Below, one piece after another: positions 5,727-46,338 of a stretch of 64,000 bases of DNA. The notes under the pieces were generated by a model, which worked only from the letters and a program-made list of their open reading frames with translations, did no database searches and had not been told where the DNA came from. The stretch covers positions 1-64,000 of the IMG/VR virus record IMGVR_UViG_3300027747_002221; one strand, 5' to 3'. Within the stretch, counting starts at the first letter, position 1; every line of letters starts with the position of its first letter. Position numbers and translations under genes: made by a program.

Positions 5727-5958
5727 TAGATTCTACACCTTCAATCTCGCAAATTTTTCTATTAACTTCTCGTATTTCTTCTTTTAGTAAATTTGTATAT
5801 GGTTCCAAATTGAATATTAAATTTATATACATTTCATATTTTTCTTTATTATCTTGGCAATCGTATAAGCGAGTTATCCAAAGGTTATATAACTCTGCAC
5901 ATAAATCTCGTTCGTCACCTATTGTATTTTTTATTTTGAATAATTCTTCTGCTGTCAT
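5665..5958 (-). CDS. Hypothetical helical protein
   Basis: 97-aa ORF overlapping both neighbours in the operon. Confidence 0.5.
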   Translation of the reverse strand: MTAEELFKIKNTIGDERDLCAELYNLWITRLYDCQDNKEKYEMYINLIFNLEPYTNLLKEEIREVNRKICEIEGVESIGETEYTRECNNKYGFEKPN

Positions 5959-6458
5959 AATATATTAAAATCAAAAGATGCCACTCGGCGTTGTATACTA
6001 GATGGTGTTGCTTTATGCCAGAACTTTTTACCGTTATTTACTAGGAATAAATCTCCAGCAATTGGCTGAAAAGATTCTTCGCAATCCCCATATTTAAATT
6101 GGACTGCTCCGCCAGTTTCTAAATAAGTATTATCAAAATAATATAGAAAAAATAAATCGTACCCCTCAAACATATCAGTATGCCAACCTTGATTATCCTT
6201 ATCTACACCGTCCCACACGATAAATTTATTATATCTCGAATTATGCCAATTAGCATCTATATATTTTTCTTTTAAGTAATATGCAAATGTGTTTAATCTA
6301 TTAGTTAATTCCAAAGGAATATCTTTGATACCATTATCTCTAGATCTTTCTTCCACATTCAATAATTTAAAATCATTAATTTTTATTAATGATAGCGCAT
6401 CGGGTTCCAAAAATTTAAAAAATCCCTTTTCTTCTATATCTTTTACTATACTAGACAT
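5955..6458 (-). CDS. 2OG-Fe(II) oxygenase
   Basis: WDGVD...WHTD...GGAVQF...FWHKA...RRVASFDF. Confidence 0.72.
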   Translation of the reverse strand: MSSIVKDIEEKGFFKFLEPDALSLIKINDFKLLNVEERSRDNGIKDIPLELTNRLNTFAYYLKEKYIDANWHNSRYNKFIVWDGVDKDNQGWHTDMFEGYDLFFLYYFDNTYLETGGAVQFKYGDCEESFQPIAGDLFLVNNGKKFWHKATPSSIQRRVASFDFNIL

Positions 6459-8125
6459 GATGCCATTACCTCACTTTTAATAATCTCCAAATTATTTATT
6501 AATAATTCTTCAATAGTTTGTATTCTAAATTTGCCTAGTAACATTCTTATTGATCTAGGTTTAGAATTTTGGTCAAAAATATCATCAATTTCTTCTTGTA
6601 TAGGAATAAAATCATCTAGTTGCTTTATTATATTAAAACTAAGTTTGGCAAAATCTCCGGGTGTTATATATGTTTCAAATAAATGATAGCAATTTTTTAT
6701 TAAAAAATTACCTGCATTATTCATAAACCACATCTCTTTTATATCATCTTCAGTAAAAGAATAACAAGATTTTATCGTTTCAAAATAATTTACTTTATTT
6801 TTATACAATGTATTCCAACTATCAGACCCAGCTTCGTCTACTATATCGGAATAAACTTTTACAGTTTTAATGTTATACTTTTCTTTATAAACTTTATCGT
6901 TTAATCTAGAATCCGGAAGAAACATATAGTCATGTCTATAACTTCCCCATGCCTTAAAATTCCATATTATTTCCATTTCGTCGTAAAAATCTTGTATTGT
7001 TGAGCCTGGCATGCCCAATATTAATTCTAATGCAGGAACAGGAAAATTAAATTCTTCGCATCTATTTTTAATATGTTCACTTAATTTAATTTTATCTTTA
7101 AAAGAAAGATCAATCCTTTCTGCAACTTTCATTGCCTCATCTGATATACTTTGTATTGAAACTGTAGGCACTATAGAATTTCTAATTAGATCATTCCATT
7201 TATCATCTTTTTGGTTTTTTATTCTAATATCCGATCCAACTATATTAAACCAAGAATCAATTAATTTTTTTCTTCTATTTAAATCTTTGGATTTAACAGT
7301 CGAAATATCAGTCAGACTAAATTTATTATTCCATGCAAATTCAAATATTTCTAAATCTCTTTCTTCAAAAGCACCAAAATTTGCATCAGTTAAATATGCT
7401 CCAGTATACCCACATTTGATCATAGCTAAAATATCTCGTTTAACTATATCCAATGGCTTTTTGTAAATTTTTGTTCCTATTCCTCCACCCCATTCGCAGA
7501 ATACACATTTATAGGGACACCCCCGTGTTGTTTCCAAAACAATAAAAGGTTCCATTTGTTTTGTATAAGCATAATTTAAAATTTCAGTTAAATACTTTTC
7601 ATGTTCTTCATATACTGAATAGTTAATATCGAGTAAATATGTTTTATTTTTTTCAGATTGCAATTCCCACGATACATCTTTTTTATTAGGTTTGCCATTT
7701 GAGGTAAACCAGGAATCAATTAAATCTTCTACGAATACTTCTCCAGGTTTAGTGGGTTGGCATATAAAATCATAATCAATCCTTGATTCTAAAAATTTAT
7801 TGTCATTGGTACCAATATGCGGGCCACCTAATACTGTAATTTTATTTGAATTTTTATTTTTAATTGTTTTTGCTATATTATCTAATATATCGTAATTCCA
7901 GACATATGAAGAAAATAAAATTATATCTGCTGTTTGTATTTCTTCAATTACCTCATCTATAGTCTGATACATATCCCATTTATAAGGAGCTGGCAACCAT
8001 TCTACATTTTTAGAATATTTACCGTAACGTGTATAGTGACTTTGACATAGTAAATATGTCAAATTATTTACTAAAGACCAGTCAGCGTGAGGGGGATTAA
8101 TGAATGCTATTTTTAATTTCAACAT
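6446..8125 (-). CDS. Cobalamin-binding (B12-dependent) radical SAM protein
   Basis: N-terminal Rossmann-like FSSYVWN...VLGGPHI; ETTRGCPYKCVFC; LTDANFG. Likely start MLKLKIAFINPP at 8125 (ORF track extends to 8161). Confidence 0.82.
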   Translation of the reverse strand: MLKLKIAFINPPHADWSLVNNLTYLLCQSHYTRYGKYSKNVEWLPAPYKWDMYQTIDEVIEEIQTADIILFSSYVWNYDILDNIAKTIKNKNSNKITVLGGPHIGTNDNKFLESRIDYDFICQPTKPGEVFVEDLIDSWFTSNGKPNKKDVSWELQSEKNKTYLLDINYSVYEEHEKYLTEILNYAYTKQMEPFIVLETTRGCPYKCVFCEWGGGIGTKIYKKPLDIVKRDILAMIKCGYTGAYLTDANFGAFEERDLEIFEFAWNNKFSLTDISTVKSKDLNRRKKLIDSWFNIVGSDIRIKNQKDDKWNDLIRNSIVPTVSIQSISDEAMKVAERIDLSFKDKIKLSEHIKNRCEEFNFPVPALELILGMPGSTIQDFYDEMEIIWNFKAWGSYRHDYMFLPDSRLNDKVYKEKYNIKTVKVYSDIVDEAGSDSWNTLYKNKVNYFETIKSCYSFTEDDIKEMWFMNNAGNFLIKNCYHLFETYITPGDFAKLSFNIIKQLDDFIPIQEEIDDIFDQNSKPRSIRMLLGKFRIQTIEELLINNLEIIKSEVMASCLV

Positions 8126-9116
8126 ACTTAAAAGTCTCTTTAAAGACGCACTCACCCACATCTCTTACAATTTTTTTATAGTCATTTTTTATAAAACAAG
8201 TAAAAGGGCATTTTTTAAAATATTCACATTCGAAACAATTGTATTGATCAAAGAATTTTTGTATTATGATGGTAGAACCTAAATTTTTAGTGCTACTATC
8301 TCTTAATAAAACAGATCCTGAGCATCCGGCAGGATTAGTACCATCATACATAACTGTATAACTATTGCCTCTTGTACAGGACATTCTATTTTCTCTAGAA
8401 TTTTCTGTAAAATATGATATATTCAAACATAAAGGGTAATTATCAACCAAGTGTTTATAAAATTTTAATAGGTCTGATTCTTTTGGCATTAAGGTTTCAG
8501 AAATACTTATTGATGGTAGAAAAGAATCCCAATCGCATCTGAAATTATTATACAAATAATCAAAATATGAATCGCCCTTTATAACAGCTTCAATATTTTG
8601 TTTTGTCATTACCAAGGATATCATTTCAATTTTATCTTTAAAAATTTCTATATTATTTTTAAAGATATCAAACTGAGTATTAGTAAATCTACCATGGGGA
8701 TCGTATGATACTGATATTTTTAAATTATTTTTTTCAAGGAAATCTGAAACTTTTTTAGTTTCAAAAAAAACTAAATTTGTAACAAAATTAAAAACTAGTG
8801 TTTTTTCGGTATCCACCTTACTTTTTATTTTATCTATGAATCTTTGATATATACTTAAAAATTCTTCTTGAATCCAAATATCTTGAAATATTTCTCCACC
8901 CATTATATGTAATTTAAAATATGTAGATCTTTTATTATTATTGATCCATTCTACGATTCCTGGGACTTTGGAAAGTATTTCTTTTTCAGATGCACCTTGT
9001 GTATTGGTATGATCTTGAGGACAAAATACACACTTAAGATTGCAATGATCAAAAAGACAAATAACTAATTCTGCATAATCTATAATTTTTTTATCAATTA
9101 ATTCATAGGGTATCAT
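8097..9116 (-). CDS. Radical SAM protein with Cys-rich (SPASM-like) C-terminus
   Basis: CNLKCVFC, MGGE; C-terminal CTRG...GCSG...CFECEYFKKCPFTC...C. Confidence 0.82.
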   Translation of the reverse strand: MIPYELIDKKIIDYAELVICLFDHCNLKCVFCPQDHTNTQGASEKEILSKVPGIVEWINNNKRSTYFKLHIMGGEIFQDIWIQEEFLSIYQRFIDKIKSKVDTEKTLVFNFVTNLVFFETKKVSDFLEKNNLKISVSYDPHGRFTNTQFDIFKNNIEIFKDKIEMISLVMTKQNIEAVIKGDSYFDYLYNNFRCDWDSFLPSISISETLMPKESDLLKFYKHLVDNYPLCLNISYFTENSRENRMSCTRGNSYTVMYDGTNPAGCSGSVLLRDSSTKNLGSTIIIQKFFDQYNCFECEYFKKCPFTCFIKNDYKKIVRDVGECVFKETFKYVEIKNSIH

Positions 9117-10312
9117 TTTAGTGTAAATTTAAATAATTTTTCTCTCATTTTTTGCTGAGCTAAAGATTTAATATATGGTAAAAGTACAAAAAGTATTTGT
9201 TCTCTTAAATCAAGCGGAATATGAATCATTGCAATTTTTTCTTTAAGATTATCGTCTAAAACGTTATTATAATCTTCTTCCGACAAAATTTCTTTTCTTG
9301 CAGAATCCATATATTTAAAATTATAACTTGGATCACCATCATGGCCCGCATTTGTCAAATCTTTTATTATTAATGCTTTAGTGTCCTCAGACATCCACAC
9401 CGGCCAATTTCTAGAATCAGTCATCATTTTTGCAAAAGGAACGTTTGAAAAATCCACATCAGATGTCCCAGATGATCCTCCGGGATTACTATAACCCATA
9501 ATAGAAATAGCAAATTCATCGGTAACATTACATAAATCTTTTACATCTTTATCACTTATCAAAGATAAATCAAGCTTTGAATTCTTTCCAGGTTGATAAC
9601 TTTTAAAGTATGGCGCGCCGTCAAGATTTTTAAAATATGGGGCTTTATAAACTGACATTTTATCTAATTCTAAATAATTTTTAATTGTTTTAGAATGACC
9701 TCCCAATATTTTTTGTGCATCGTCATCCAATATATAGGTATCTATATGTTTTCTTACCTCTAAGATGTATAGTTCATATGTTCGTTTAATAAACCGTGCA
9801 AATAATTTTTTTAATTTTTCTTTTTTACTAAAGTTTCTATCATAGAATGCTGTTGCCAACATAAATTCTATAGAAGGCGAAAAATCTAAATCAGAAAAAT
9901 CAGACACCTCTGCAGTATCCCATAAGGATTTTATACGAGAAATTAAAGAATCGCACGGATTGCTATATACCTGCATTTTATGCCCATAGCAATCCGCAAA
10001 AGTTTCAAAAGAATCTTTATCCATATTCGTAGTGGATTTTAACCAAGATACTATTATCTTAGAAAAATTTTCTTCATCTGCAAATATAACAATTTTTTCT
10101 CCCTTTATAGCATAAAGGTTGCGTATAAAATCTGAAAAAGAAATGTCGCCCAACGCCTCATTCCAAGTTTTACCCGTGTTTAATGTTTTTGGATACACTG
10201 AAGCATCTTTAAGATCGTCCGTAGCATATTCTTTCGATATAACTACGCGATAATTAAAAGTGTCGATATGCTTATCTTGTTGTAAGAATACATCGTCAAA
10301 TAGGTGCAACAT
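9113..10312 (-). CDS. Hypothetical protein, paralog of 2527..3627
   Basis: 399-aa ORF; shared motifs as noted for 2527..3627. Confidence 0.6.
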   Translation of the reverse strand: MLHLFDDVFLQQDKHIDTFNYRVVISKEYATDDLKDASVYPKTLNTGKTWNEALGDISFSDFIRNLYAIKGEKIVIFADEENFSKIIVSWLKSTTNMDKDSFETFADCYGHKMQVYSNPCDSLISRIKSLWDTAEVSDFSDLDFSPSIEFMLATAFYDRNFSKKEKLKKLFARFIKRTYELYILEVRKHIDTYILDDDAQKILGGHSKTIKNYLELDKMSVYKAPYFKNLDGAPYFKSYQPGKNSKLDLSLISDKDVKDLCNVTDEFAISIMGYSNPGGSSGTSDVDFSNVPFAKMMTDSRNWPVWMSEDTKALIIKDLTNAGHDGDPSYNFKYMDSARKEILSEEDYNNVLDDNLKEKIAMIHIPLDLREQILFVLLPYIKSLAQQKMREKLFKFTLK

Positions 10313-11003
10313 TGGATTCCTCTTCTTTATTTTCTATTAATTGTAATCCTTCAGATATTCCAAAAGTTAACAAAAATAATGGGTTATTTTCGGTTGCCCA
10401 GTATGAGTATAAATTTTTTCCTCTAAACATATATTCACTGAAATATTTGGTATAAAACTTCAAATTTGATTCTTTAATCTTGCCATAGTAAATATAAAAA
10501 AGCTCATGCTTTAATAGAGATAAAAAATTTATGCCTGTTAGTTCTTCAGTTTCATCTACAGGAAATCCTTTTGCAAATTCTTGCATTTCCGGGGAATTCA
10601 CAATATACATATTAAATAGTGTTAAACTGTCTAGTTTACTTTCCCATTGTTTTATGATTTCCAAATTATCTTGTATAAAATTTTTATGGGGTATCAAATT
10701 TTCTATATCTATTTCTTTATATTCTAACAATAAATTTATTGTTAAAATTTCTAAACTTGGAATAGAACAAAGAACTGTAGAATTTAAATATTCCTTTAAA
10801 AGTTCTTCCTGTTCATTTTTATCATTAAAGCTAATATCGCATGGTATATCCAAATTAGAAATATACGTTAACAGTTTTGTGCCTTTAATTTTACTATTAG
10901 TATAATCTATTATAAATTCAACAGATTTATTTTCAAAATATTTTTTTAAATCTTCAATTGAAATAGGTGCAATAGTGTTAATTATAGTATTTGGTAAATT
11001 CAT
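10296..11003 (-). CDS. Hypothetical protein
   Basis: Likely start MNLPNTII at 11003 (TAATG coupling to stop of 11003..11638). Confidence 0.6.
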   Translation of the reverse strand: MNLPNTIINTIAPISIEDLKKYFENKSVEFIIDYTNSKIKGTKLLTYISNLDIPCDISFNDKNEQEELLKEYLNSTVLCSIPSLEILTINLLLEYKEIDIENLIPHKNFIQDNLEIIKQWESKLDSLTLFNMYIVNSPEMQEFAKGFPVDETEELTGINFLSLLKHELFYIYYGKIKESNLKFYTKYFSEYMFRGKNLYSYWATENNPLFLLTFGISEGLQLIENKEEESNVAPI

Positions 11004-11638
11004 TATCTTCTTCCTCTGGCAAAGTGGCATGCTGAATGGCATGATGCATGACAAACTGTGGCATCGTACACATAACTCTGATTTCTCGCATAATTTTGAT
11101 ACGCTGTTCTACATCTTTCCATAAAATTTTCCATTGAGTATGTAGATATTTGTAAATTTGTGTCTACTGCCCCGCGTGCAGGCGTTACATAATCACTCAA
11201 CCCCGTCTGCCCGGTAGAAAAGTTTAAATATGCTACAGCAATTACATCGTATACGAAACCCGCAGTAGGCTTAGTTCCGTTATTGCCACCAGTCCCATTA
11301 ACAAATAAACGAGCCTGGACACTTCTTATTTTGAGATACCGAGATGTAAAATAACTAAGATAAGTATGGATCCTCTCTGCAATAATTTGGTCACCGACAC
11401 CGGCAGGGTTGCCATCCATTTTCCCAATAAATGGGTCATTGGGTGGATAGTTAGGATTGTCATAATTATTGCCGCCCATATCACTAGTGGGTATAACTGC
11501 AGTCGCATATGCTGTTCCTGGGGCATATGTGGGCAAATTATTCGTACCCCAAGTCACACCCTGCCAATTGGTATACATATAGTCTTGGAATCTGCTTATT
11601 ATATTACGTTCGTTAACGGGATTGGTTAGTACCGCCAT
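11003..11638 (-). CDS. Gly/Asn/Thr-rich protein with C-terminal (CHxx)3 tail; candidate modification substrate
   Basis: Ends ...DATVCHASCHSACHFARGRR; lies immediately downstream of a rSAM/SPASM gene. Confidence 0.65.
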   Translation of the reverse strand: MAVLTNPVNERNIISRFQDYMYTNWQGVTWGTNNLPTYAPGTAYATAVIPTSDMGGNNYDNPNYPPNDPFIGKMDGNPAGVGDQIIAERIHTYLSYFTSRYLKIRSVQARLFVNGTGGNNGTKPTAGFVYDVIAVAYLNFSTGQTGLSDYVTPARGAVDTNLQISTYSMENFMERCRTAYQNYARNQSYVYDATVCHASCHSACHFARGRR

Positions 11639-12693
11639 GTTTCTTTCCTTATATTAATAATCTTATTTGATATAATATTTATACCTGCCAGAGATTTCAT
11701 TAAACTTTTTGGTGCACCACATACGTCATCTTGCCATGATAATTGGTGACAATCTCCACCACAATACTCAAAAACTTCGCAGGAATAACACCGGGTGTCC
11801 CCGCTTCTTTCACAGGCAATATTTTCTATGCGAGCAGGATTTGTTAAAAGCTGTTCTATACTATCAGTTATTTTTCCAAAATAGTTTTCTGGGGCGCTAT
11901 TTGGGCAACCTGCGATTGTCCCATCTGCATTAATTGTAAATAATTTTTCCTCACAATTTCTACAAAAAGTGCCAGATTTATTAAATCCGCTCTCAAACTT
12001 AATATATACATCTTCTAAAAAATCATTAGAAAACCATTTTCTTGCATCATACTGAACAGTTTGTTCATGCATTTTTAAAAACCATGCATCCTGTTCCAAA
12101 TTAGAAGGAAATATTTCCGGATGCAAATTTGCATTACCATTACCCGTCAATCTTTCAAATGATACTTCTTGTACTCCGAGTATTTTTATCCAGCTAAGTA
12201 AATGAATTGGGTCTATATTAATAGTATCTTTAGTTACACTAATAAAAAGCTTTACAGTTACGCTTTCATTGAGTAAAGTTTTTACATTTTTTAACCAAAG
12301 ATCAGATTGTTTAGTATTTGCAAATCTTATTTTTGGATCCCAACTTGTACCTACTCTATTTCCGAGTTGATTTTTTACAAAATTTATAATTTCAGAATCA
12401 AGTTTGTACGTCAAGTTTGTTGTTGCACACCAGGACATATTATTCCAAAGACCATTACAAGAATTATAAACCTTTTTCATTTCAGAAACAGGGACAAGAA
12501 AAGGTTCTCCGCCATGAAATTCAAAGTGTACGTTATCTAAATTTGGGGCGTAGGATTTTAGTCTGGTTATCCAATCTATAACTAAATCAGTATTCCAATA
12601 AACTTTGGCACCGTTAATACCATTAGTAAAACAATGTTTACAATTTAGGTTACAGGTTTCTGTTGTTTTTAAATAAACTAAAGCATTTTTCAT
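11626..12693 (-). CDS. Radical SAM/SPASM domain protein
   Basis: CNLNCKHC, FHGGEP; CRNC...IAGCP...CYSCEVFEYCGGDC...C SPASM pattern. Confidence 0.9.
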   Translation of the reverse strand: MKNALVYLKTTETCNLNCKHCFTNGINGAKVYWNTDLVIDWITRLKSYAPNLDNVHFEFHGGEPFLVPVSEMKKVYNSCNGLWNNMSWCATTNLTYKLDSEIINFVKNQLGNRVGTSWDPKIRFANTKQSDLWLKNVKTLLNESVTVKLFISVTKDTINIDPIHLLSWIKILGVQEVSFERLTGNGNANLHPEIFPSNLEQDAWFLKMHEQTVQYDARKWFSNDFLEDVYIKFESGFNKSGTFCRNCEEKLFTINADGTIAGCPNSAPENYFGKITDSIEQLLTNPARIENIACERSGDTRCYSCEVFEYCGGDCHQLSWQDDVCGAPKSLMKSLAGINIISNKIINIRKETWRY

Positions 12694-13177: not shown

Positions 13178-14848
13178 TTACATTAAGGCAATTTCAATTA
13201 TGCCTTCCTCATGTGTAGTTTTATCTTCCAATGCAATAAACCTAATCGGCAAATTATTAATATCTGTTCTTACCGCAATGCCGGGATTTGTAGATACGGT
13301 TAATAAATCGCCCTTACTACAAGTTCCGATTATTCTAATTGGAACGCGTCCTTTAAGTGCAACTGCTTGAGAATTTTCTAATTCCGAATTCATTAAGTAT
13401 GCAGGTTTATCAGAAATAACACCTATTATTCTATTGGGATAATGCATAGTTGCAATAGTTACTTCTTTTTCTCCACCTATCATAACTATGGTACCAACCG
13501 GATATTCTATATCGGTTAAATATTTTTCTGCCAAGTCAGCATAGTTTGCAGAAGTTGCTGTTCCTGAGAAGGTTGTGGCATATAAAGTATTAATTGCAGG
13601 ATTAAAGTAAAAATTTCCAAATCCGCTCACGCATGGAGTTTGTACACCAAATCCAGAAACAAAAACGGGATAGAAGTTTTGGTTGGCGCCAAGGCCAGTT
13701 ACAGAAATTGTGGTGCTAGATATCGATAATCCTGTTGCGCCAATCGGACCTGTTGCGCCAGTTAATCCCGTTGCGCCAGGTAGGCCCGGTGAACCAATTG
13801 ATCCTGTTGCGCCTGTTGAGCCTTTAGGACCCGTCGCTCCTGGGATAATGCTGGTTGCGCCAGTTGCGCCAATTCCTGTAGCACCTGTTGCGCCAATCGG
13901 ACCTGTTGCGCCAGTTAATCCCGTTGCGCCAGGTAGGCCAGTTGCACCCGTTGCACCCAATCCTGTTGCGCCCGTTGCACCCAATCCTGTTGCGCCTGTT
14001 GAGCCGTTCGCGCCGGTTGCACCGGTTGAACCTGTTGAGCCTTTCGCGCCGGTTGCCCCGGTGAATCCTGTAGCGCCAATCGGACCTGTTGCTCCTGTTC
14101 CGGTTGCGCCCGATGCACCCACTCCTGTTGCGCCAGTTAGACCCGTTGCGCCGGTTAAACCCGTTGCACCAGTTGGTCCTGTGCTCCCTGTTGAGCCAGT
14201 TGATCCCGTTGGTCCGGTTGTGCCGGTCGCACCCACAATGGCATTTCCCTGAGCACCAGTTGCACCCACGGGCCCTGTTGCGCCGGTTGGTCCTATAGAT
14301 CCTGTAGCACCGCGAAGACCTGTTGCGCCAGTGGGGCCTGTAACAATTACATTAGAACCCATAGGCCCAACTGGCCCAGTAGCACCAATAGGACCAGCTG
14401 GACCTTGCCCACCACCTAAAACGGGTAATATTGAAACAATATCGCCGGCTACTGTTGCAGTTGAAAGTATAACAGAATTAGATGTTACCGTATAGTCCGC
14501 TGCTTCTAAAGGACCACCTGGCGAAATTAAAACACCATTGACCCAGACTAAAACAGGATCAGTATTTGAATTAAATGTTAAATAAGTGCCCGCTAAACTA
14601 TTTGTTGTGTTATCAAATGTTGTTGTTGCATTTGCTGTTACATAATCATATCTAACTAAGGTTGAAGTATTTGCATCCAGCGGTGACCAATATCTTGTAC
14701 CATTTGGATCGCCCCGTAAATAATATCCAAGCGCACCCGGTAAACCTAAATTTGGTTCTGCCTGAGATAGCTGTAAGAAATTATATCTATCTAAAGATAT
14801 ATTGCCAGTTGCTGTGCGTACTTTGCCGCTTAAATTTTGTAGTGCCAT
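13178..14848 (-). CDS. Collagen-like tail fibre protein with C-terminal chaperone-like domain
   Basis: Long G-X-Y run ([10 protein letters not shown]); C-terminal [10 protein letters not shown]...GVIS..PAYLMN...ALKGRVP domain typical of large-phage fibres. Confidence 0.75.
13725..14410 (-). repeat. Collagen-like Gly-X-Y coding repeat (GATG[P/L/A/S]T)
   Basis: Degenerate 9/18-nt repeats (cctgttgcgcc, ccagttgcacc); locally GC-rich. Confidence 0.9.
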
Positions 14849-27724: not shown

Positions 27725-27753
27725 ATTATAATATAAAATTACAATCTTGTCAA
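27725..27753 (-). promoter_or_regulatory. Sigma70 early promoter
   Basis: TTGACA-17-TATAAT. Confidence 0.75.
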
Positions 27754-27761
27754 GGACTTAG

Positions 27762-28004
27762 TTATCCATTTCTATGATGTCTGCTCTGGCGGTTGCCTTT
27801 TGCATAGGTCTTCAAATACTCAATACCTACTGTACCGTCTTCAATTTCTTCCAACGCTCGCAGAATATTGCTTCTTGCATCACTATGCTTTTCCTTTTTT
27901 AGTTCTCGTGCTCTTGCAGTAGCAACCAAAACCATATCATACCGATTGCCTATTTTACGTACGGCATCTTCTGATGTATACCTACCCCGATCTAGATCTT
28001 TCAT
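27762..28004 (-). CDS. rpoZ: RNA polymerase omega subunit homolog
   Basis: TSEDAVRKIGNRYDMVLVATARAREL...ALEEIEDG vs E. coli [26 protein letters not shown]...ALREIEEG. Confidence 0.85.
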   Translation of the reverse strand: MKDLDRGRYTSEDAVRKIGNRYDMVLVATARARELKKEKHSDARSNILRALEEIEDGTVGIEYLKTYAKGNRQSRHHRNG

Positions 28005-28017
28005 AACTACCTTTATA

Positions 28018-28094
<77 letters not shown>

Positions 28095-28265
28095 AATTTA
28101 TTTAATTGTTTTCGTTACTATTAGTTTGTTGTTCGTTATATTGTTGAAGACGCATTTCAAATTGTTCTTCAGTCAAATTATGCCAACCTATACAAACTCC
28201 TGTTGGGCTACGACCACACCCGCATTGGGTATTTACTTCTGTCAAAGTATCTCTTGGATTAACTA

Positions 28266-28511
28266 TCATTCCATCTCCTTCTTTTTAATTTTCATTCCAA
28301 CAAATGTTCCAAAAAATGCACCTAGAATAGCAGGAATCATTAACCAATGATTCGTTGTATAATTTATAATAGCTATACTACCTAGCACATAGCAAGCCAC
28401 TGCCCATATACTAGCTTTTAATACTTGATTATGCTGTACATATCTTAAGTAATATGTATAAACTATATCGAGTAAAAAAATAGCTATAAATGTTGTTACA
28501 TAATCTATCAT
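28266..28511 (-). CDS. Small membrane protein
   Basis: Real start MIDYVTT at 28511 (the longer ORF overlaps tRNA-Leu); three hydrophobic segments. Confidence 0.6.
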   Translation of the reverse strand: MIDYVTTFIAIFLLDIVYTYYLRYVQHNQVLKASIWAVACYVLGSIAIINYTTNHWLMIPAILGAFFGTFVGMKIKKKEME

Positions 28512-28516
28512 ATTTT

Positions 28517-28602
28517 TGGTACCAGAGACGGGACTCGAACCCGTATGCCCTTGCGAGCGGCAGATTTTAAGTCTGCTGTGTATACCATTCCACCACTCTG
28601 GC
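28517..28602 (-). tRNA. tRNA-Leu(TAA)
   Basis: GCAGA-CTTAAAA-TCTGC, long variable arm, CCA. Confidence 0.92.
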
Positions 28603-28642
28603 ATTTGCTTATTATAAACTCTTTAGCTAAAAAGAACAATCT

Positions 28643-28933
28643 TTAGTCATCCAAAACATGATCCGCAACAGGCGAAACCTTATCCAAATAATTCTCTTTA
28701 TATCTTTTCTTTGATTCTTCCATATCAATGGAAATGCCAACTGAATCTTTTACTACAGTATAAACGGAATGCATAATCTTTTGTACCATTCTTTTTGCCA
28801 TGTCATCTATTACTTTATACGGATCGTCACCTGTTGCAATTCTTTGGAGAGCAAATCCATATTCATATTTACGAACTCGATCTACCCATTCTTCGAAAGT
28901 TTCATCTGGTTTTATTCTGATTACGTTGGACAT
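28643..28933 (-). CDS. Stand-alone glutamyl-tRNA reductase (HemA) dimerization-domain-like protein
   Basis: RVRKYEYGFALQRIATGDDPYKVIDDMAKRMVQKIMH fits the HemA C-terminal pattern RxxExxxAxxxLAxGxDPxxVLxxLxxxLxxKLxH. Confidence 0.6.
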   Translation of the reverse strand: MSNVIRIKPDETFEEWVDRVRKYEYGFALQRIATGDDPYKVIDDMAKRMVQKIMHSVYTVVKDSVGISIDMEESKKRYKENYLDKVSPVADHVLDD

Positions 28934-28939
28934 TCATTT

Positions 28940-29302
28940 TTAATCTTTAATTTGGCTATCGCCTGGCATTACTCTATAGTTATCTTCCACAGAATCTGGC
29001 GTGGAGACTTCTATAACTGTACCTGCTTCAATACACTCTAATTGGTGTGGCATACAAGGAACATTGTGCCATACCGCACCTTCATGCAATTCTTTTTCGA
29101 GAACTTCTGCTGTCATAGTATCAATCCAACGAACAATAAACTTGCCACTTTGTATGTACCAGGTTTCTTCTTTGTCTTTATGGAAGTGCATACTAAACTT
29201 AGCGCCCGCGTTGAAGTTCATAAACTTTCCGCAATATTTGTCATTGGTAGCCCAGATTAATTCTGAACCCCAACCTTTTGTAACCAAACCTGTTAATCTC
29301 AT
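28940..29302 (-). CDS. Cupin domain protein
   Basis: KGWGSELIW...FSMHFHKDKEETW...PHQL...EVST. Confidence 0.75.
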   Translation of the reverse strand: MRLTGLVTKGWGSELIWATNDKYCGKFMNFNAGAKFSMHFHKDKEETWYIQSGKFIVRWIDTMTAEVLEKELHEGAVWHNVPCMPHQLECIEAGTVIEVSTPDSVEDNYRVMPGDSQIKD

Positions 29303-29317
29303 TAAACTTCCTAACTA

Positions 29318-29391
29318 TGGAGCGGGATAGGAGAATCGAACTCCTGACTTGAACTTGGAAGGATCTCGTTTTACCACTAAACTAACCCCGC
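29318..29391 (-). tRNA. tRNA-Gly(TCC)
   Basis: Cloverleaf, CTTCCAA loop, CCA. Confidence 0.9.
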
Positions 29392-29883
29392 TTATGCTGC
29401 TAGCGCCGCCATAGCCATGACCTCTTTTAATCGGTCCGCGGCATAACTTGCGGCAAACGCATTTGGTTTAACCATAGGTACTACGTTACACATACCTTTG
29501 ATATAACCAACTGCTTGTTGAATAACTATAGAACTATTATAACATTCTTTAGGATTAATGTCAAGATGAATTTGAACTTCCTTGTCACCTATAACATCTG
29601 CTTCTAAAAGTTTGTGATATAATTCTGCAACTTTGTAAACTTCTGTCATTAGACGCATAGATGGTTTCCCCGCTTTTGCATCAAAGTCTATTTCAGTTTG
29701 TATTTCTCCAAAAATCTTACAACCATGGCATCCATCGATATGGACTACAATCGCAAGGGTATAATCTGCATACCATTTTCCATTGCGTCTATAGCGTTCG
29801 GAGTCTGCTCCTAAATATATTTTAGTTTCAGGACTTTGTTCTGCAATAAATCTTGTTACTTCAGCTATATCAATTTTTTTCAT
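29392..29883 (-). CDS. RNase H-like YkuK/DUF458 family protein
   Basis: IYLGADS...E..K...IHLDIN...KPNAFAASYAAD. Confidence 0.7.
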   Translation of the reverse strand: MKKIDIAEVTRFIAEQSPETKIYLGADSERYRRNGKWYADYTLAIVVHIDGCHGCKIFGEIQTEIDFDAKAGKPSMRLMTEVYKVAELYHKLLEADVIGDKEVQIHLDINPKECYNSSIVIQQAVGYIKGMCNVVPMVKPNAFAASYAADRLKEVMAMAALAA

Positions 29884-29897
29884 AGTAGCACCTTTTG

Positions 29898-29971
29898 TGG
29901 AGCGGGTAGCGAGAATCGAACTCGCGAATAAACCTTGGCAAGGTTTCAGGTTACCATTACATCATACCCGC
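29898..29971 (-). tRNA. tRNA-Gly(GCC)
   Basis: AAACC-TTGCCAA-GGTTT, CCA. Confidence 0.92.
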
Positions 29972-29979
29972 ATATTTAA

Positions 29980-30008
29980 ATTATAACACCAAACAAACAT
30001 TTTGTCAA
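29980..30008 (-). promoter_or_regulatory. Sigma70 early promoter
   Basis: TTGACA-17-TATAAT. Confidence 0.75.
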
Positions 30009-30016
30009 GCATTATT

Positions 30017-30090
30017 TGGTACCCCGTCACGGAGTCGAACCGCGGCCCTCAGTTTTGGAGACTGATGTGCTACCGTAACACTTACGAGAT
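30017..30090 (-). tRNA. tRNA-Trp(CCA)
   Basis: TCAGT-CTCCAAA-ACTGA, CCA. Confidence 0.88.
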
Positions 30091-30327
30091 ATTATTTTTA
30101 TACATAGCCATTAAGGCATCTTCTGTGGTCAAAATATCGTAGAACTCATCTTTGTCAGTTCCCGTATTATCAATTACGGATTTTTTTGATATGGATTTAA
30201 ACGCTTCATCTTCATTCTGTTGATCTTCAATTTCTCTTAGATCTCTGCCAAAAATAGCGTCCCATCTATTTTTGTATTCCTCATTGGTAACACTAAATGG
30301 TCTTGGGATAGAACCTTTTCCTGTCAT
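30082..30327 (-). CDS. Small hypothetical phage protein
   Basis: MTGKGSIPRPFSV...WDAIFG; TATAAATA at 30360-30367 upstream. Confidence 0.55.
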   Translation of the reverse strand: MTGKGSIPRPFSVTNEEYKNRWDAIFGRDLREIEDQQNEDEAFKSISKKSVIDNTGTDKDEFYDILTTEDALMAMYKNNIS

Positions 30328-30373
30328 TGCAATCTCCTAATAAATAAATGATAATAACATATTTATATCTACC

Positions 30374-30949
30374 ATGGATCCATACCTCGAGTTAGAAGTT
30401 TCTATCGACGCAACCGACGAAGAAATAAAAATACAATATAGAGCTATGGCTATGATTCATCATCCCGACAAAGGTGGAGATGAAGAAAAATTTAAACGTA
30501 TAAAAGAAGCGTATGAGATTTTATCTGATCCTATACGTCGTAAGGCATATGAAATATCTGGCGATGCAGAAACTAATTTACAAATTAGGAATGCTGCACT
30601 TGATCATATTGCTCAAATGATGGGACAAATTGTTCCCCAATTTAATTCTGAAGCTGATGATTTGTTTGCTATAATGAGACACGAAGTAAATAATATACGC
30701 CAGGGTATGATTGAAAATACAAACGTATGTGTTGGATATATGGCAAATCTACAAAAGGTTATGGTCAGAGTAAATGCCAAACATGATAAACATAATATCA
30801 TAATGGATATACTGCAAAAACAAATAGATTTTAGAAATCGAGAACACGCGGAATTTGCGCAACGTATTAAGGTTTGTGATCTTGAAATTGAAATTCTCAA
30901 AGACTACGAATATGGTTTAATAGAACGTATTCAATTGCCTGAGAATTAA
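30374..30949 (+). CDS. J-domain (DnaJ-like) protein
   Basis: MDPYLELEV...HHPDKGGDEEKFKRIKEAYEILSD (HPD motif), then helical C-terminus. Confidence 0.85.
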   Translation: MDPYLELEVSIDATDEEIKIQYRAMAMIHHPDKGGDEEKFKRIKEAYEILSDPIRRKAYEISGDAETNLQIRNAALDHIAQMMGQIVPQFNSEADDLFAIMRHEVNNIRQGMIENTNVCVGYMANLQKVMVRVNAKHDKHNIIMDILQKQIDFRNREHAEFAQRIKVCDLEIEILKDYEYGLIERIQLPEN

Positions 30950-30950
30950 A

Positions 30951-31024
30951 TGGATGCGGGAGATGGATTCGCACCACCCTCGAGAGAGCTTATGAGACTC
31001 TTCGGGTCACTAGACCTTCCCGCG
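30951..31024 (-). tRNA. Atypical tRNA-Met(CAT), initiator-like (C1:A72)
   Basis: CGCGGGA/TCCCGCA acceptor, 4-bp D-stem with 4-nt loop, CTCATAA loop, T-loop TGCGAAT, CCA. Confidence 0.7.
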
Positions 31025-31029
31025 CAATC

Positions 31030-31105
31030 TGGTGGTAATGAGTGGACTCGAACCACTAACACTCTGCTTATGAAGCAGGAAGACTAACCATTGTCCTACA
31101 TTACC
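31030..31105 (-). tRNA. tRNA-Met(CAT), elongator
   Basis: Cloverleaf, CTGC-TTCATAA-GCAG, CCA. Confidence 0.85.
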
Positions 31106-31124
31106 TATTACATAAAAATATAAA

Positions 31125-31214
31125 TGGCGGAGCGTCAGGGAGTCGAACCCTGTGAACCATTTTACCTGTTCTACGGTTTAGCAAACCGCTGCCTTACCAC
31201 CCGGCCCACGCTCC
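31125..31214 (-). tRNA. tRNA-Ser(GCT)
   Basis: GCGGT-TTGCTAA-ACCGT, long variable arm, GCCA. Confidence 0.92.
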
Positions 31215-31218
31215 ATTT

Positions 31219-31310
31219 TGGCGGAAGACGGAGGAGTCGAACCCCATCCCTGTTAAGAGAACCTGGTTTTCAAGGCCAGTCGCAGGACCAACCCCGCTGC
31301 ATCATCTTCC
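31219..31310 (-). tRNA. tRNA-Ser(TGA)
   Basis: CTGGC-CTTGAAA-ACCAG, long variable arm, GCCA. Confidence 0.88.
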
Positions 31311-31424
31311 AAATTTGTGTTAGGTATTTTTGTGTCAGGAACCTAACAAACCCCGTGAGCACAGCCCATCCTGTTTTCGTGTCAGCGGAGGCGGAATATG
31401 GTTACAGGTCCGCCCTGTTATTTA
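31311..31424 (-). ncRNA. Candidate structured ncRNA between tRNA-Phe and tRNA-Ser
   Basis: GC-rich non-coding spacer with several helices (see findings). Confidence 0.4.
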
Positions 31425-31500
31425 TGGTACCAAGAGACGGGATCGAACCGCCCACACCCGGATTTTCAATCCGGTGCTCTACCAACTGAGCTATCTTGGC
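31425..31500 (-). tRNA. tRNA-Phe(GAA)
   Basis: CCGGA-TTGAAAA-TCCGG, CCA. Confidence 0.93.
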
Positions 31501-31502
31501 AT

Positions 31503-31577
31503 TGGGTCGAGGTACGAGGATCGAACTCGTGATAGCGGAATCACAACCCGCGGTTTTACCACTAAACTAACCTCAAC
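31503..31577 (-). tRNA. tRNA-His(GTG)
   Basis: Encoded G-1:C73, GCGGG-TTGTGAT-TCCGC. Confidence 0.92.
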
Positions 31578-31583
31578 ATAGAT

Positions 31584-31660
31584 TGGCCGGCCCTGAGAGA
31601 CTCGAACTCCCAACCTCTAGTTTCGAAGACTAGCACTCTAATCCATTGAGTTAAGGGCCG
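31584..31660 (-). tRNA. tRNA-Arg(TCG)
   Basis: CTAGT-CTTCGAA-ACTAG, GCCA. Confidence 0.92.
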
Positions 31661-31664
31661 TTAT

Positions 31665-31756
31665 TGGTACCAGCGGTGAGACTCGAACTCACTCAAGAAC
31701 GCTAATCTGGCGCTAAAAGGTGTATAAGACCTCTCTGACTACCCAGTCTCGCTGGC
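31665..31756 (-). tRNA. Atypical tRNA with TAT anticodon and long variable arm
   Basis: GCCAGCG/CGCTGGT acceptor, GACT-GGGT-AGTC mini D-arm, GAGGT-CTTATAC-ACCTT, variable hairpin AGCGC/GCGTT, GTGAG-TTCGAGT-CTCAC, ACCA. Confidence 0.75.
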
Positions 31757-31847
31757 AATTAATACTGACTACCATATAGAAACACACTTGATATAGTAGC
31801 ATTTGCTATCACGGATGAACCCGAGTTTAATCAAATATGTTTTTATA
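31757..31847 (-). ncRNA. Candidate three-way-junction ncRNA
   Basis: 13-bp closing stem AAACATATTTGAT/ATCAAGTGTGTTT enclosing two hairpins. Confidence 0.45.
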
Positions 31848-31923
31848 TGGTACGGGCAGAGGGATTCGAACCCACGACCAATAGATTAAAAGTCTACTGC
31901 TCTACCGACTGAGCTATACCCGC
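31848..31923 (-). tRNA. tRNA-Lys(TTT)
   Basis: GTAGA-CTTTTAA-TCTAT, CCA. Confidence 0.93.
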
Positions 31924-32034
31924 GTTTATTGCTCTTCGTAATGCTTTGTTAGGCTTACGATGGCTACCCGCTTTTCTTTTTAAAGCCAAAACAACGAAGG
32001 GGTTACGTTGCCTGACGATTATCTTATGCTTCAT
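31894..32034 (-). CDS. Small very basic ORF (46 aa) running into tRNA-Lys
   Basis: AGGAG RBS; MKHKIIVRQRNPFVVLALKRKAGSHRKPNKALRRAINAGIAQSVEQ; not in ORF track. Confidence 0.55.
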   Translation of the reverse strand: MKHKIIVRQRNPFVVLALKRKAGSHRKPNKALRRAINAGIAQSVEQ

Positions 32035-32053
32035 TTTTATCTCCTAAAACACT

Positions 32054-32082
32054 ATTATAACATCTTTTTTAAAACTTGTCAA
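32054..32082 (-). promoter_or_regulatory. Sigma70 early promoter
   Basis: TTGACA-17-TATAAT. Confidence 0.75.
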
Positions 32083-32085
32083 ATT

Positions 32086-32159
32086 TGGCAGAGGGTACTG
32101 GGATCGAACCAGTGATGACAGAGTCAAAGTCTGTAGTGTTGCCTCTACACTAACCCCCA
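32086..32159 (-). tRNA. tRNA-Gln(TTG)
   Basis: ACAGA-CTTTGAC-TCTGT, GCCA. Confidence 0.9.
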
Positions 32160-32160
32160 A

Positions 32161-32250
32161 CAAAAAAATTATGGCAGGTGAGGTATCCACTACTCAGGGT
32201 CTAGCCCCCTTTCGTTGCCCATTCTCCTTTTACTTTCCTTACCATAAACT
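32161..32250 (-). ncRNA. Candidate structured ncRNA between tRNA-Arg and tRNA-Gln
   Basis: Closing stem TATGGTA/TGCCATA followed by a T-run. Confidence 0.3.
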
Positions 32251-32325
32251 TGGTCCGCCGAAGAGGAATCGAACCTCTATTAATAGCTTAGAAGGCTACT
32301 GTTCTATCCGTTGAACTATCGGCAG
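32251..32325 (-). tRNA. tRNA-Arg(TCT)
   Basis: GTAGC-CTTCTAA-GCTAT, CCA. Confidence 0.92.
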
Positions 32326-32330
32326 GTATT

Positions 32331-32594
32331 TTATTCTGCGACTGCCAATACATTATCCTCAGAAACTACACCGAGATACATATCGCCTTCTTTTACTGTC
32401 TTGATATTTTGCCATTGCAAATATACAATATCTCCAACTTTGACTTCTTCAACATCTGGTCCAATTGCAAGTACAGTTCCTGTCTTTGCTCTAGGATCAG
32501 CTAAAGTCTTGCCTACATAGATACCGCTTTCAGTTTCTTCTTGACGTTCCGTATCTTTAACTAGTATATTGTTTCTAAGTGGTTGATATTTCAT
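32331..32594 (-). CDS. groES: Co-chaperonin GroES (Cpn10)
   Basis: YQPLRNNILVK...TESGIYV...GTVLAIGP...VKVGDIV...EDNVLAV. Confidence 0.88.
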   Translation of the reverse strand: MKYQPLRNNILVKDTERQEETESGIYVGKTLADPRAKTGTVLAIGPDVEEVKVGDIVYLQWQNIKTVKEGDMYLGVVSEDNVLAVAE

Positions 32595-32614
32595 AGTTTT
32601 CTTTCAAGTTAATA

Positions 32615-32688
32615 TGGTGCCCCATGACAGAATCGAACTGCCGTAACCTGATTACAAAACAGGTGTAATACCATTATACTAATAGGGC
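32615..32688 (-). tRNA. tRNA-Thr(TGT)
   Basis: Cloverleaf, TTTGTAA loop, CCA. Confidence 0.9.
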
Positions 32689-32690
32689 AT

Positions 32691-32765
32691 TGGTACCTGG
32701 TGACAGTTTCGAACTGCCGACCCTCTCGGTGTAAACGAGACGCTCTACCACTGAGCTAACCAGGC
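32691..32765 (-). tRNA. tRNA-Val(TAC)
   Basis: TCTCG-TTTACAC-CGAGA, CCA. Confidence 0.93.
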
Positions 32766-32769
32766 AATT

Positions 32770-32854
32770 TGGTGGAGGTAGTTAGATTCGAACCAACTCA
32801 CCCGAAAGAACAGATTTACAGTCTGCCGCGCCTCTCCAACTGCGCCGTACCTCC
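32770..32854 (-). tRNA. tRNA-Tyr(GTA)
   Basis: GCAGA-CTGTAAA-TCTGT, long variable arm, CCA. Confidence 0.93.
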
Positions 32855-32858
32855 AATT

Positions 32859-32933
32859 TGGCTCCCCTGCGTGGGCTCGAACCACGGACCAAATGATTAA
32901 CAGTCATCTACTCTACCACTGAGCTACAAGGGA
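32859..32933 (-). tRNA. tRNA-Asn(GTT)
   Basis: ATGA-CTGTTAA-TCAT, GCCA. Confidence 0.92.
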
Positions 32934-32940
32934 ATATACA

Positions 32941-33017
32941 TGGTCCGTGTGACACGATTCGAACATGCGACCACCTGGTCCCAAACCAGGAGCTCTACCA
33001 GGCTGAGCTACACACGG
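32941..33017 (-). tRNA. tRNA-Pro(TGG)
   Basis: CCTGG-TTTGGGA-CCAGG, CCA. Confidence 0.93.
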
Positions 33018-33024
33018 ATAAATT

Positions 33025-33099
33025 TGGTGGAGGATAGGAGATTCGAACTCCTGACTGAAGCTTGCAAAGCTACTGCGTTCCCAATTACGCCAATCCCCC
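33025..33099 (-). tRNA. tRNA-Ala(TGC)
   Basis: G3:U70 pair, TTTGCAA loop, CCA. Confidence 0.9.
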
Positions 33100-33110
33100 G
33101 AATATTTTTT

Positions 33111-33187
33111 TGGTGCCCCAGGCGAGACTCGAACTCGCAAAATTTGGCTTCTAAGACCAACACGTATACCAATTCCGTCACCGAGGC
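33111..33187 (-). tRNA. tRNA-Leu(TAG) with short variable loop
   Basis: TTGGT-CTTAGAA-GCCAA, 5-nt variable region, ACCA. Confidence 0.85.
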
Positions 33188-33193
33188 AAATAC

Positions 33194-33269
33194 TGGCGGT
33201 CTTAGGGGGTAACGATCCCCACTCTTACGGCGTGACAAGCCGTCGTGCGTCCATGAACACTTTAAGACC
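33194..33269 (-). tRNA. tRNA-Asp(GTC)
   Basis: ACGGC-TTGTCAC-GCCGT, GCCA. Confidence 0.9.
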
Positions 33270-33270
33270 A

Positions 33271-33470
33271 TATTAGGATAAGCTACTGGTTTTCCGGGCC
33301 AGCCCTTAATTGAGCAGTTACTCTGTCCATCCCATTTATTCTGTCGTCTGTGTGCAGTTGGGATTCTGCCTATCAGAGCCTGAGTATTTCTCTCGCTAAC
33401 GGTTTTCTGCCACCGGATCTCTATCGCTAATCAAGCGCTATTTTAACGAAAATAGTAACGGGATCTTTTT
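33271..33470 (-). ncRNA. Candidate ~200-nt multi-hairpin ncRNA
   Basis: No ORF; at least 5 hairpins; directly downstream of a sigma70 promoter. Confidence 0.5.
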
Positions 33471-33480
33471 ACTTGTTTCT

Positions 33481-33508
33481 ATTATAACATCATTACAATA
33501 ATTGTCAA
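33481..33508 (-). promoter_or_regulatory. Sigma70 early promoter
   Basis: TTGACA-16-TATAAT. Confidence 0.7.
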
Positions 33509-33518
33509 GCATTAATTT

Positions 33519-33596
33519 TGGAACCTAGGGTCAGATTTGAACTGACGATTTTACGGATTTGCAATCCGGTGCATTTGACCGCTCTGCCACCTAGGC
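33519..33596 (-). tRNA. tRNA-Cys(GCA)
   Basis: CCGGA-TTGCAAA-TCCGT, TCCA. Confidence 0.9.
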
Positions 33597-33631
33597 ATAA
33601 ACCATTATTTTGTAGCCTGTACACAAAATAA

Positions 33632-33707
33632 TGGCGTCCCGTACCGGATTCGAACCGGTGTGAATAGCGTGAAAGGCTACTATCCTAGGCCTCTAGATGA
33701 ACGGGAC
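33632..33707 (-). tRNA. tRNA-Glu(TTC)
   Basis: GTAGC-CTTTCAC-GCTAT, GCCA. Confidence 0.92.
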
Positions 33708-33710
33708 ATT

Positions 33711-33784
33711 TGGTCCTCTCGGATGGTAACGATCCAACGTCTATCGATTATCAATCGATTGCTCTACCTTTGAGCTACAAGAGG
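33711..33784 (-). tRNA. tRNA-Ile(GAT)
   Basis: ATCGA-TTGATAA-TCGAT, CCA. Confidence 0.9.
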
Positions 33785-45834: not shown

Positions 45835-46338
45835 TTATAGTACCCTAGATTCAGGATCTTCTGAAAGTAATTGTCTTTTAGCCTTAGTTTTTACTTCAGC
45901 TTCAGAATCTTTTACTTCAATTTTTTTTGGCTTCTTATGTTCAGGAATAATACGCTCCAAGAAAACTTTTAGCATGCCATTCATTATAGCTGCATCTTTT
46001 ACTTCAACGGTGTCTTCTAAAGCAAAAGTTCTTGTGAATGCGCGATTAGCAATTCCTTTAAATAAGAATGAGTCATCAGCGTCTTCATTATGTACATTAC
46101 CTTTGACAATCATCTTGCCATCAGCTAATTCAATTTCAATATCCTGTTTAGCAAAACCAGCAACAGCCAATTCGATAACGTAAGTGTTATCGCCTGTTTT
46201 CTTGATATTGTATGGAGGATAGTTTGGGATTGCCTTTGTTAGATCATCATGGATCTTTGATAGGCGATTGAATTGATCATCAAACCCTACAAAAAATCTA
46301 TCAAAATCTTTAGGCAGGTTATTTAAAAAATATGTCAT
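45835..46338 (-). CDS. Small heat-shock protein Hsp20 (IbpA-like)
   Basis: YPPYNIKK...IELAVAGF...GIANRAFTRTF...NGML...IPEHKKP; start MTYFL at 46338 after AAGGAG. Confidence 0.92.
   Translation of the reverse strand: MTYFLNNLPKDFDRFFVGFDDQFNRLSKIHDDLTKAIPNYPPYNIKKTGDNTYVIELAVAGFAKQDIEIELADGKMIVKGNVHNEDADDSFLFKGIANRAFTRTFALEDTVEVKDAAIMNGMLKVFLERIIPEHKKPKKIEVKDSEAEVKTKAKRQLLSEDPESRVL

Follow-up and report, generated by a model that had tools for sequence, protein, structure and literature searches.

Glutamyl-tRNA reductase (GluTR/HemA/GtrR) catalyses the first committed step of the C5 pathway, in which Glu-tRNA(Glu) is diverted from translation into heme synthesis. The enzyme forms a V-shaped homodimer that hands glutamate-1-semialdehyde to GSA aminomutase, and its C-terminal dimerisation domain (Pfam PF00745; structures 1GPJ and 4YVQ chain A) folds on its own when isolated and serves in plants as the docking site of the regulator FLU (PMC4726326). 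The phage tetrapyrrole genes known so far, namely those for heme oxygenase, bilin reductases and ALA synthase and the cobalamin genes, encode enzymes. Aquatic T4-like myoviruses carry hemO-pcyX cassettes, sometimes with a functional, heme-insensitive viral ALA synthase (valaS) that has been suggested to free Glu-tRNA for translation, whereas the role of the catabolic genes is described as enigmatic (PMC11480375). Here we report the computational analysis of a small gene of a freshwater T4-like phage, which encodes only a homologue of the GluTR dimerisation domain (hereafter GlutRd). The gene is well conserved and belongs to a large family that we found only in phages, and its distant members lie beside phage heme-breakdown genes. 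Sequence, predicted structure and genomic linkage suggest that the protein may act on host GluTR, although this function is inferred.

A stand-alone homologue of the GluTR dimerisation domain

The analysed window comprises the first 64,000 nucleotides of the 222,055-bp IMG/VR virus record IMGVR_UViG_3300027747_002221, which is estimated to be complete (hereafter G000). The phage is a T4-like myovirus that encodes UvsX, a gp41-type helicase, a family-B polymerase, gp32, gp59 and gp33. The GC content is 35.6%, and the same DNA occurs in many freshwater and lake metagenomes. The features of the locus are listed in Table 1.

Table 1 Features of the window and of the wider genome
Feature	Coordinates (strand)	Description
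GlutRd	28643-28933 (-)	ATG start, 96 aa, stop included
Cupin gene	28940-29302 (-)	120 aa; Cupin_2, phrog_7851; stop 6 nt before the GlutRd start, probably co-translated
tRNA-Gly(UCC)	29318-29391 (-)	Conserved upstream flank of GlutRd in the close clade
tRNA-Leu(UAA)	28517-28602 (-)	Conserved downstream flank of GlutRd in the close clade
tRNA array	28018-33784 (-)	25 tRNA genes, in which GlutRd is embedded
tRNA-Glu(UUC)	33632-33707 (-)	Within the array; encoded CCA end, 4-nt variable loop
tRNA-Ile(UAU)	31665-31756 (-)	ARAGORN call of 92 nt, anticodon at position 31; unusually long for a class I tRNA; conserved in several related phages (loci L005, L006, L010, L014, L019-L021)
Promoter-like site	29536-29564 (-)	Perfect sigma-70 consensus (TTGACA-17-TATAAT with an upstream TG); consensus match only; could drive tRNA-Gly(UCC), the cupin gene and GlutRd as an early transcript
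Promoter-like sites	29980-30008 and 27725-27753 (-)	Perfect 12/12 sigma-70 consensus (TTGACA-17-TATAAT), also on the coding strand; with the site above, three within 2.3 kb, one of them inside the RNaseH-like ORF
Small membrane-like protein	28266-28604 (-)	Listed 112-aa ORF overlaps tRNA-Leu(UAA); the real gene is probably the 81-aa version starting at the internal Met, hydrophobic, matching the 81-aa gene of related locus L002
RNA polymerase omega (RpoZ/Rpb6)-like gene	27762-28004 (-)	80 aa; Pfam E 4e-11; 43 bits to E. coli omega
DnaJ-domain gene	30374-30949 (+)	E 6e-19; inside the tRNA array, one of the few + strand genes
Hsp20 homologue	about 45910-46338 (-)	
Low-GC stretch	1-12000	26-31% GC
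B12-binding radical-SAM protein	6446-8161	Within the low-GC stretch
Sugar-modification genes	50-64 kb	HAD/nucleotidyltransferase, DegT aminotransferase
Probable tail fibre	13178-14848 (-)	556 aa; collagen triple-helix repeats, Peptidase_G2 intramolecular-chaperone-type C-terminus
Tetrapyrrole block, outside the window	G000 134330-136654	Locus L029, 8316-10654; rubrerythrin, ferrochelatase-like gene, hemO and FDBR in a row
FDBR	G000 134330-134893	
hemO	G000 135087-135515	

The observation in the original prediction, that an ORF within the tRNA array encodes a dimerisation domain of HemA without the catalytic or NADPH domains, is confirmed. The pattern of proteobacterial HemA C-termini that it named is present with conservative substitutions (R21..E24...A28...I32-A33.G35-D-D-P..V41...M45...M49..K52-I-M-H55). 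Pfam-A identifies GlutR_dimer (PF00745) at 29.4 bits (E 1e-6), above the curated gathering score of 22.9 bits, with residues 13-64 aligned to profile positions 29-80 of 99, and no other domain is found in the protein. A six-frame search of the genome gives 28.3 bits for the same model. The ORF yields no hit to an NADPH-binding domain, for which 96 aa leave no room. The N-terminal catalytic domain of GluTR (GlutR_N, PF05201) is absent from the protein and from the whole genomes of the two complete carriers, G000 and a 322-kb phage with terminal repeats (G001), and none of the four genomes searched has it. The name 'glutamyl-tRNA reductase', which JGI pipelines give to some homologues, is therefore an over-annotation.

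A large family under purifying selection

A word-indexed search found 24 close homologues, all about 96 aa. An exhaustive HMMER search of 1.84 billion cluster representatives (50% identity) found 142 clusters at E ≤ 1e-3, nearly all of 85-105 aa, and none is a full-length HemA. Of 91 diverse aligned members, 89 hit PF00745 on their own, with a best E of 4.6e-10, so the match is not a chance hit. The best PDB sequence found with the family profile is Methanopyrus kandleri GluTR (1GPJ, residues 338-391), and the Arabidopsis GluTR dimerisation domain (4YVQ_A) is also listed. An hhalign comparison with residues 300-418 of E. coli HemA gives E 2.7e-5. Pairwise dN/dS among close homologues is 0.14-0.28, indicating a real, selected gene. 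A 184-nt metatranscriptome contig lies inside the ORF at 100% identity, although this is weak evidence of expression, because DNA carry-over is possible.

We found the family only in viruses, all of them uncultured aquatic myoviruses. It is carried by 22 IMG/VR contigs. When viral contigs were scanned further, the diverse alignments were too variable to search with, and three single divergent members returned nothing. A pattern scan of 185,579 prokaryote species genomes found no homologue, but the patterns were phage-specific, making this weak evidence of absence. A tblastn search with four divergent members against 50,697 GenBank phage records gave no hit, a megablast search of the locus gave none, and no cultured phage is known to carry the gene.

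Predicted structure and conservation

An AlphaFold2 model based on the alignment of 91 members (pLDDT 89.6) has three helices (residues 13-33, 38-65 and 71-83), followed by a less confident, conserved non-helical tail (P88-x-A-D-H-V93). In a structure search of AlphaFold/Swiss-Prot, all 30 top matches are GluTR C-termini (residues about 346-429) from gamma- and betaproteobacteria, with probabilities of 0.97-1.0 over query residues 13-96, although the individual E-values are only about 0.1-0.3. Matches in the afdb_clusters library include short entries annotated as GluTR dimerisation domains. By contrast, Foldseek against the PDB and VIA-align against 48,161 PDB chains gave only generic helical matches, BFVD gave nothing and the ESM Atlas gave no features.

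The conserved positions fall into two groups. E24, A28, G35, V41, L42, K52, H55 and P56 are GluTR-like. Of the K-L-(L/I)-H-x-P motif in the second helix, K52 is conserved in 99%, H55 in 81% and P56 in 78% of the family, whereas the protein of the window has S56; these positions align to the corresponding motif of 1GPJ and E. coli HemA. W16, Y78, Y82 and the P88-x-A-D-H-V93 tail are family-specific, and we have no explanation for them.

Two genomic contexts

The family occurs in two contexts. In type A, which includes the window and relatives down to about 43% identity, the gene is fixed between tRNA-Gly(UCC) and tRNA-Leu(UAA). It is usually preceded by an overlapping 193-aa phosphoesterase gene (phrog_547, as in L002), a slot that holds the cupin gene in the window, and is usually followed by rubrerythrin and rubredoxin, which are replaced in the window by the small membrane-like protein. 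Next come the omega-like gene, an HTH gene and an HNH gene. The omega-like gene is conserved in 12 related loci and absent from cultured phages, and a pattern scan of the 185,579 prokaryote genomes, again with phage-specific patterns, found no homologue. In one relative (L019, 8001-8801), tRNA-Leu(UAA) is partly deleted and the GlutRd frame reads through its remnant into rubrerythrin, giving a 266-aa ORF that could be a natural fusion or an assembly or deletion artefact.

Type B comprises 12 loci at 26-37% identity, with no tRNAs nearby. Here the order is metallophosphoesterase (phrog_1649) ... GlutRd - (Hsp70) - Hsp20 - ClpS - heme oxygenase - ferredoxin-dependent bilin reductase (FDBR), on one strand with short gaps, and GlutRd lies 0.35-3.8 kb upstream of the hemO-FDBR cassette. 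Three of these loci (L022, L035 and L030) encode a full-length DnaK-type Hsp70 (863 bits), Hsp20, ClpS, ribosomal protein S21 and curli CsgF/CsgG next to the GlutRd-hemO-FDBR block. Thus, the tRNA-array position is a feature of the close clade and not of the family, the emphasis placed on it by the original prediction was misleading, and a functional tie to the tRNA array as such is rejected. A family tree of the 93-aa protein interleaves the two context types and is too weak to order events.

Linkage to tetrapyrrole genes

In G000, a rubrerythrin gene, a gene for a 208-aa protein matching the PHROG family annotated 'ferrochelatase' (phrog_2954, E 6.5e-52), hemO and FDBR lie about 105 kb from GlutRd, directly upstream of gp33, gp59 and gp32. 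The best cultured match of the FDBR is in Pelagibacter phage Mosig (40% identity). G001 and two further genomes (G002 and G005) also have hemO. An ALA-synthase-type aminotransferase was not found, as there is no Aminotran_1_2 hit in G000, G001 or four partial carrier genomes, so that host GluTR would be the only ALA source in a C5-pathway host. G000 has no psbA, ClpS or Hsp70. The SAR11 phage Mosig, whose host uses the Shemin pathway, has ferrochelatase-like, hemO and FDBR genes but no GlutRd, which counts in favour of a GluTR-directed role.

A predicted complex with GluTR

A complex prediction with full-length Pseudomonas aeruginosa GluTR (HEM1_PSEAE) scored 0.57, 0.59 and 0.51, against 0.00 for all three controls, a level rated as weak support. 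In the prediction, residues 335-387 and 412 of GluTR contact residues 13-65 of the phage protein, placing it where the dimerisation domain of the partner subunit would sit. However, likeness to the native homodimer alone can produce such a score, and the GluTR used was not that of the phage's own host. Furthermore, conservation is not significantly concentrated on the predicted interface (Mann-Whitney p = 0.11), and the most invariant family-specific residues (W16, Y78, D91 and H92) lie outside it.

Host signals

None of the markers examined points to a single host. The gp23 capsid protein is 63-64% identical to those of Pelagibacter phages HTVC008M and Mosig and of Methylophilales phage Melnitz, and 60-62% identical to cyanomyophage capsids, and thus about equidistant from SAR11, OM43 and cyanobacterial phages. 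The omega-like protein is 41% identical to enterobacterial RpoZ, but scores no better against Pseudomonas or Xanthomonas omega than against Caulobacter omega, and the phage ClpS is equally close to those of Caulobacter, Agrobacterium and E. coli. The type-B contigs carry S21 and CsgF/CsgG, as pelagimyophages do (PMC7029224). SAR11 hosts are alphaproteobacteria, which use the Shemin pathway (PMC11480375) and should lack GluTR, and the Caulobacter control genome is negative for both GluTR domains. Pelagimyophage-like phages also infect OM43 methylotrophs, which are not alphaproteobacteria (PMC9004378), so C5-pathway hosts remain possible. If the hosts of the carriers lack GluTR, as would be expected for those of the nearest cultured relatives, which infect SAR11, the GluTR-directed readings fall and recruitment to another partner becomes the preferred explanation.

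Discussion

Our analysis establishes homology to the dimerisation domain, the absence of the catalytic domains, purifying selection, a distribution found only in phages and, in the 12 type-B loci, close genomic linkage to heme genes. Binding to GluTR, the direction of any effect and the rationale based on iron and Glu-tRNA are inferred, in the absence of experimental evidence of any kind. The interpretation in the original prediction is thus partly supported: the protein is a stand-alone homologue that lacks the other domains of the enzyme, and nothing in the literature searched describes it, whereas the proposed pairing with host GluTR receives only weak computational and circumstantial support, and the alternative that it stabilises HemA to supply cobalamin has none.

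We propose, with a probability of about 0.35, that GlutRd is a phage-evolved, domain-only copy of the GluTR dimerisation domain that is made early in infection. In this model, its helices 1-2 would pack against the spinal-helix/dimerisation region of a host GluTR subunit, in the place of the second subunit, and the resulting 'capped' GluTR could no longer form the homodimer that serves GSA aminomutase. This would lower flux through the C5 pathway, sparing Glu-tRNA(Glu) and NADPH, and would stop new heme from re-binding the iron mobilised by the phage's own heme oxygenase, bilin reductase and ferrochelatase-like genes. We favour inhibition over stabilisation only at about 60:40. Several points weigh against the model: a stable host dimer may not exchange subunits once host synthesis stops, and the ALA synthase added by related phages (PMC11480375) argues that these phages want more ALA, not less. 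Whether GluTR could use the phage's own tRNA-Glu(UUC) as a substrate also bears on the idea of Glu-tRNA economy.

The same target with the opposite sign is a less likely alternative. GlutRd could bind GluTR, or soak up a factor that recognizes its dimerisation domain, and thereby stabilise or de-repress the enzyme, so that ALA and heme supply continue during a long infection and feed the phage heme oxygenase/bilin reductase pathway. This would be functionally analogous to the valaS that related phages place next to hemO-pcyX (PMC11480375): GlutRd carriers lack valaS, yet GlutRd occupies a comparable place upstream of hemO-FDBR. ClpS, an adaptor that redirects ClpAP, is encoded two genes away in type-B loci, enterobacterial HemA is turned over by Lon/ClpAP, and plant GluTR is regulated through this domain by FLU (PMC4726326). 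However, no bacterial regulator is known to bind the GluTR dimerisation domain, the known bacterial degron is N-terminal, ClpS is missing from G000, and capping the dimer interface is more likely to disrupt than to help the GluTR-GSAM channel.

Exaptation is possible, although we consider it doubtful and slightly less probable than the main reading. The three-helix module may have been borrowed from GluTR long ago and now serve as a dimerisation or adaptor subunit for another partner, such as the translationally coupled phosphoesterase, a chaperone (Hsp70, Hsp20 or DnaJ) or heme oxygenase, with no action on GluTR. A phosphoesterase gene lies immediately upstream, often overlapping, in both context types, proteostasis genes are constant neighbours (including the DnaJ-domain gene 1.4 kb away in the window), and the invariant family-specific residues (W16, Y78 and the A-D-H-V tail) are absent from GluTR; this reading would hold even if the hosts lack GluTR. 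By contrast, GluTR-family motifs are retained after deep divergence, the phosphoesterases belong to two unrelated phrogs (547 and 1649) and are replaced by a cupin in the window, so that no single neighbour is constant, and phosphoesterases of this type are widespread in phages that lack GlutRd. A small protein that binds, senses or carries heme or tetrapyrroles, using conserved Tyr, His and Asp residues to hand heme to the phage heme oxygenase, is improbable: Y78 is invariant, Y82, D91 and H92 are highly conserved and the gene lies next to hemO/FDBR in type-B loci, but H92 is Gln in several members, no similarity to any known heme-binding fold was found, and the dimerisation domain is not known to be the heme site of GluTR. 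A non-functional remnant of a captured hemA gene, as its fragmentary nature and some JGI labels might suggest, is effectively excluded by the constant length and boundaries across about 142 clusters and by purifying selection, as well as by the family's own N- and C-terminal motifs and its conserved synteny. Likewise, a split or broken hemA gene is rejected, as a genome-wide search for the catalytic domain GlutR_N found no other GluTR part.

In the most far-reaching, and unlikely, form of the model, GlutRd would be the first non-enzymatic, regulatory auxiliary gene of the tetrapyrrole pathway, a phage-made subunit mimic that poisons or reprograms host GluTR. Together with phage heme oxygenase, bilin reductase and the ferrochelatase-like protein, it would switch the infected cell from making heme to dismantling it, freeing iron and Glu-tRNA(Glu) for phage production, which would help to explain why phages of non-photosynthetic bacteria carry hemO-pcyX at all. 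A widespread, strongly conserved phage protein that is nothing but the pairing domain of the pathway's gate-keeping enzyme points to protein-level control of ALA synthesis during infection, provides a small (about 93 aa), easily expressed handle on that idea, and links the Glu-tRNA pool, shared between translation and heme synthesis, to phage takeover. In practice, virome surveys could miscount these genes as catalytic hemA auxiliary genes.

Comparison with known systems

No paper in the library searched combines GluTR, a dimerisation domain and phages, or lists GluTR among auxiliary metabolic genes beyond the ALA synthase study, which does not mention GluTR fragments (PMC11480375). GlutRd shares with the hemO-pcyX/pcyA cassettes of that study, and with Mosig, the same kind of aquatic T4-like myovirus, the association with hemO-FDBR in 12 loci, the presence of ferrochelatase-like, hemO and FDBR genes in G000 as in Mosig, and a concern with the ALA-forming step and the Glu-tRNA economy. 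However, those genes encode enzymes, whereas GlutRd has no catalytic domain and can act only by binding. Compared with the GluTR dimerisation domain itself, GlutRd matches the profile, the predicted three-helix fold, the K-L-x-H-x-P motif and the G-x-D turn, but it is stand-alone, phage-encoded and without the full spinal helix, and it has W16, Y78 and a P-x-A-D-H-V tail that GluTR lacks. Among the protein regulators of GluTR (plant FLU and GBP), FLU shows that the dimerisation domain is a proven regulatory handle, but FLU is a TPR membrane protein of plants and algae, unrelated in sequence, and GlutRd would act by mimicking the domain rather than by recognizing it from outside. The concept that a virus keeps only an interaction domain of a host protein to interfere with its assembly is shared with the phage 'decoy of host sigma70'/Srd-type proteins (phrog_4592, phrog_1400) and with the CARD- or PYD-only decoys of eukaryotic viruses, whereas the target proposed here would be the oligomerisation interface of a metabolic enzyme.
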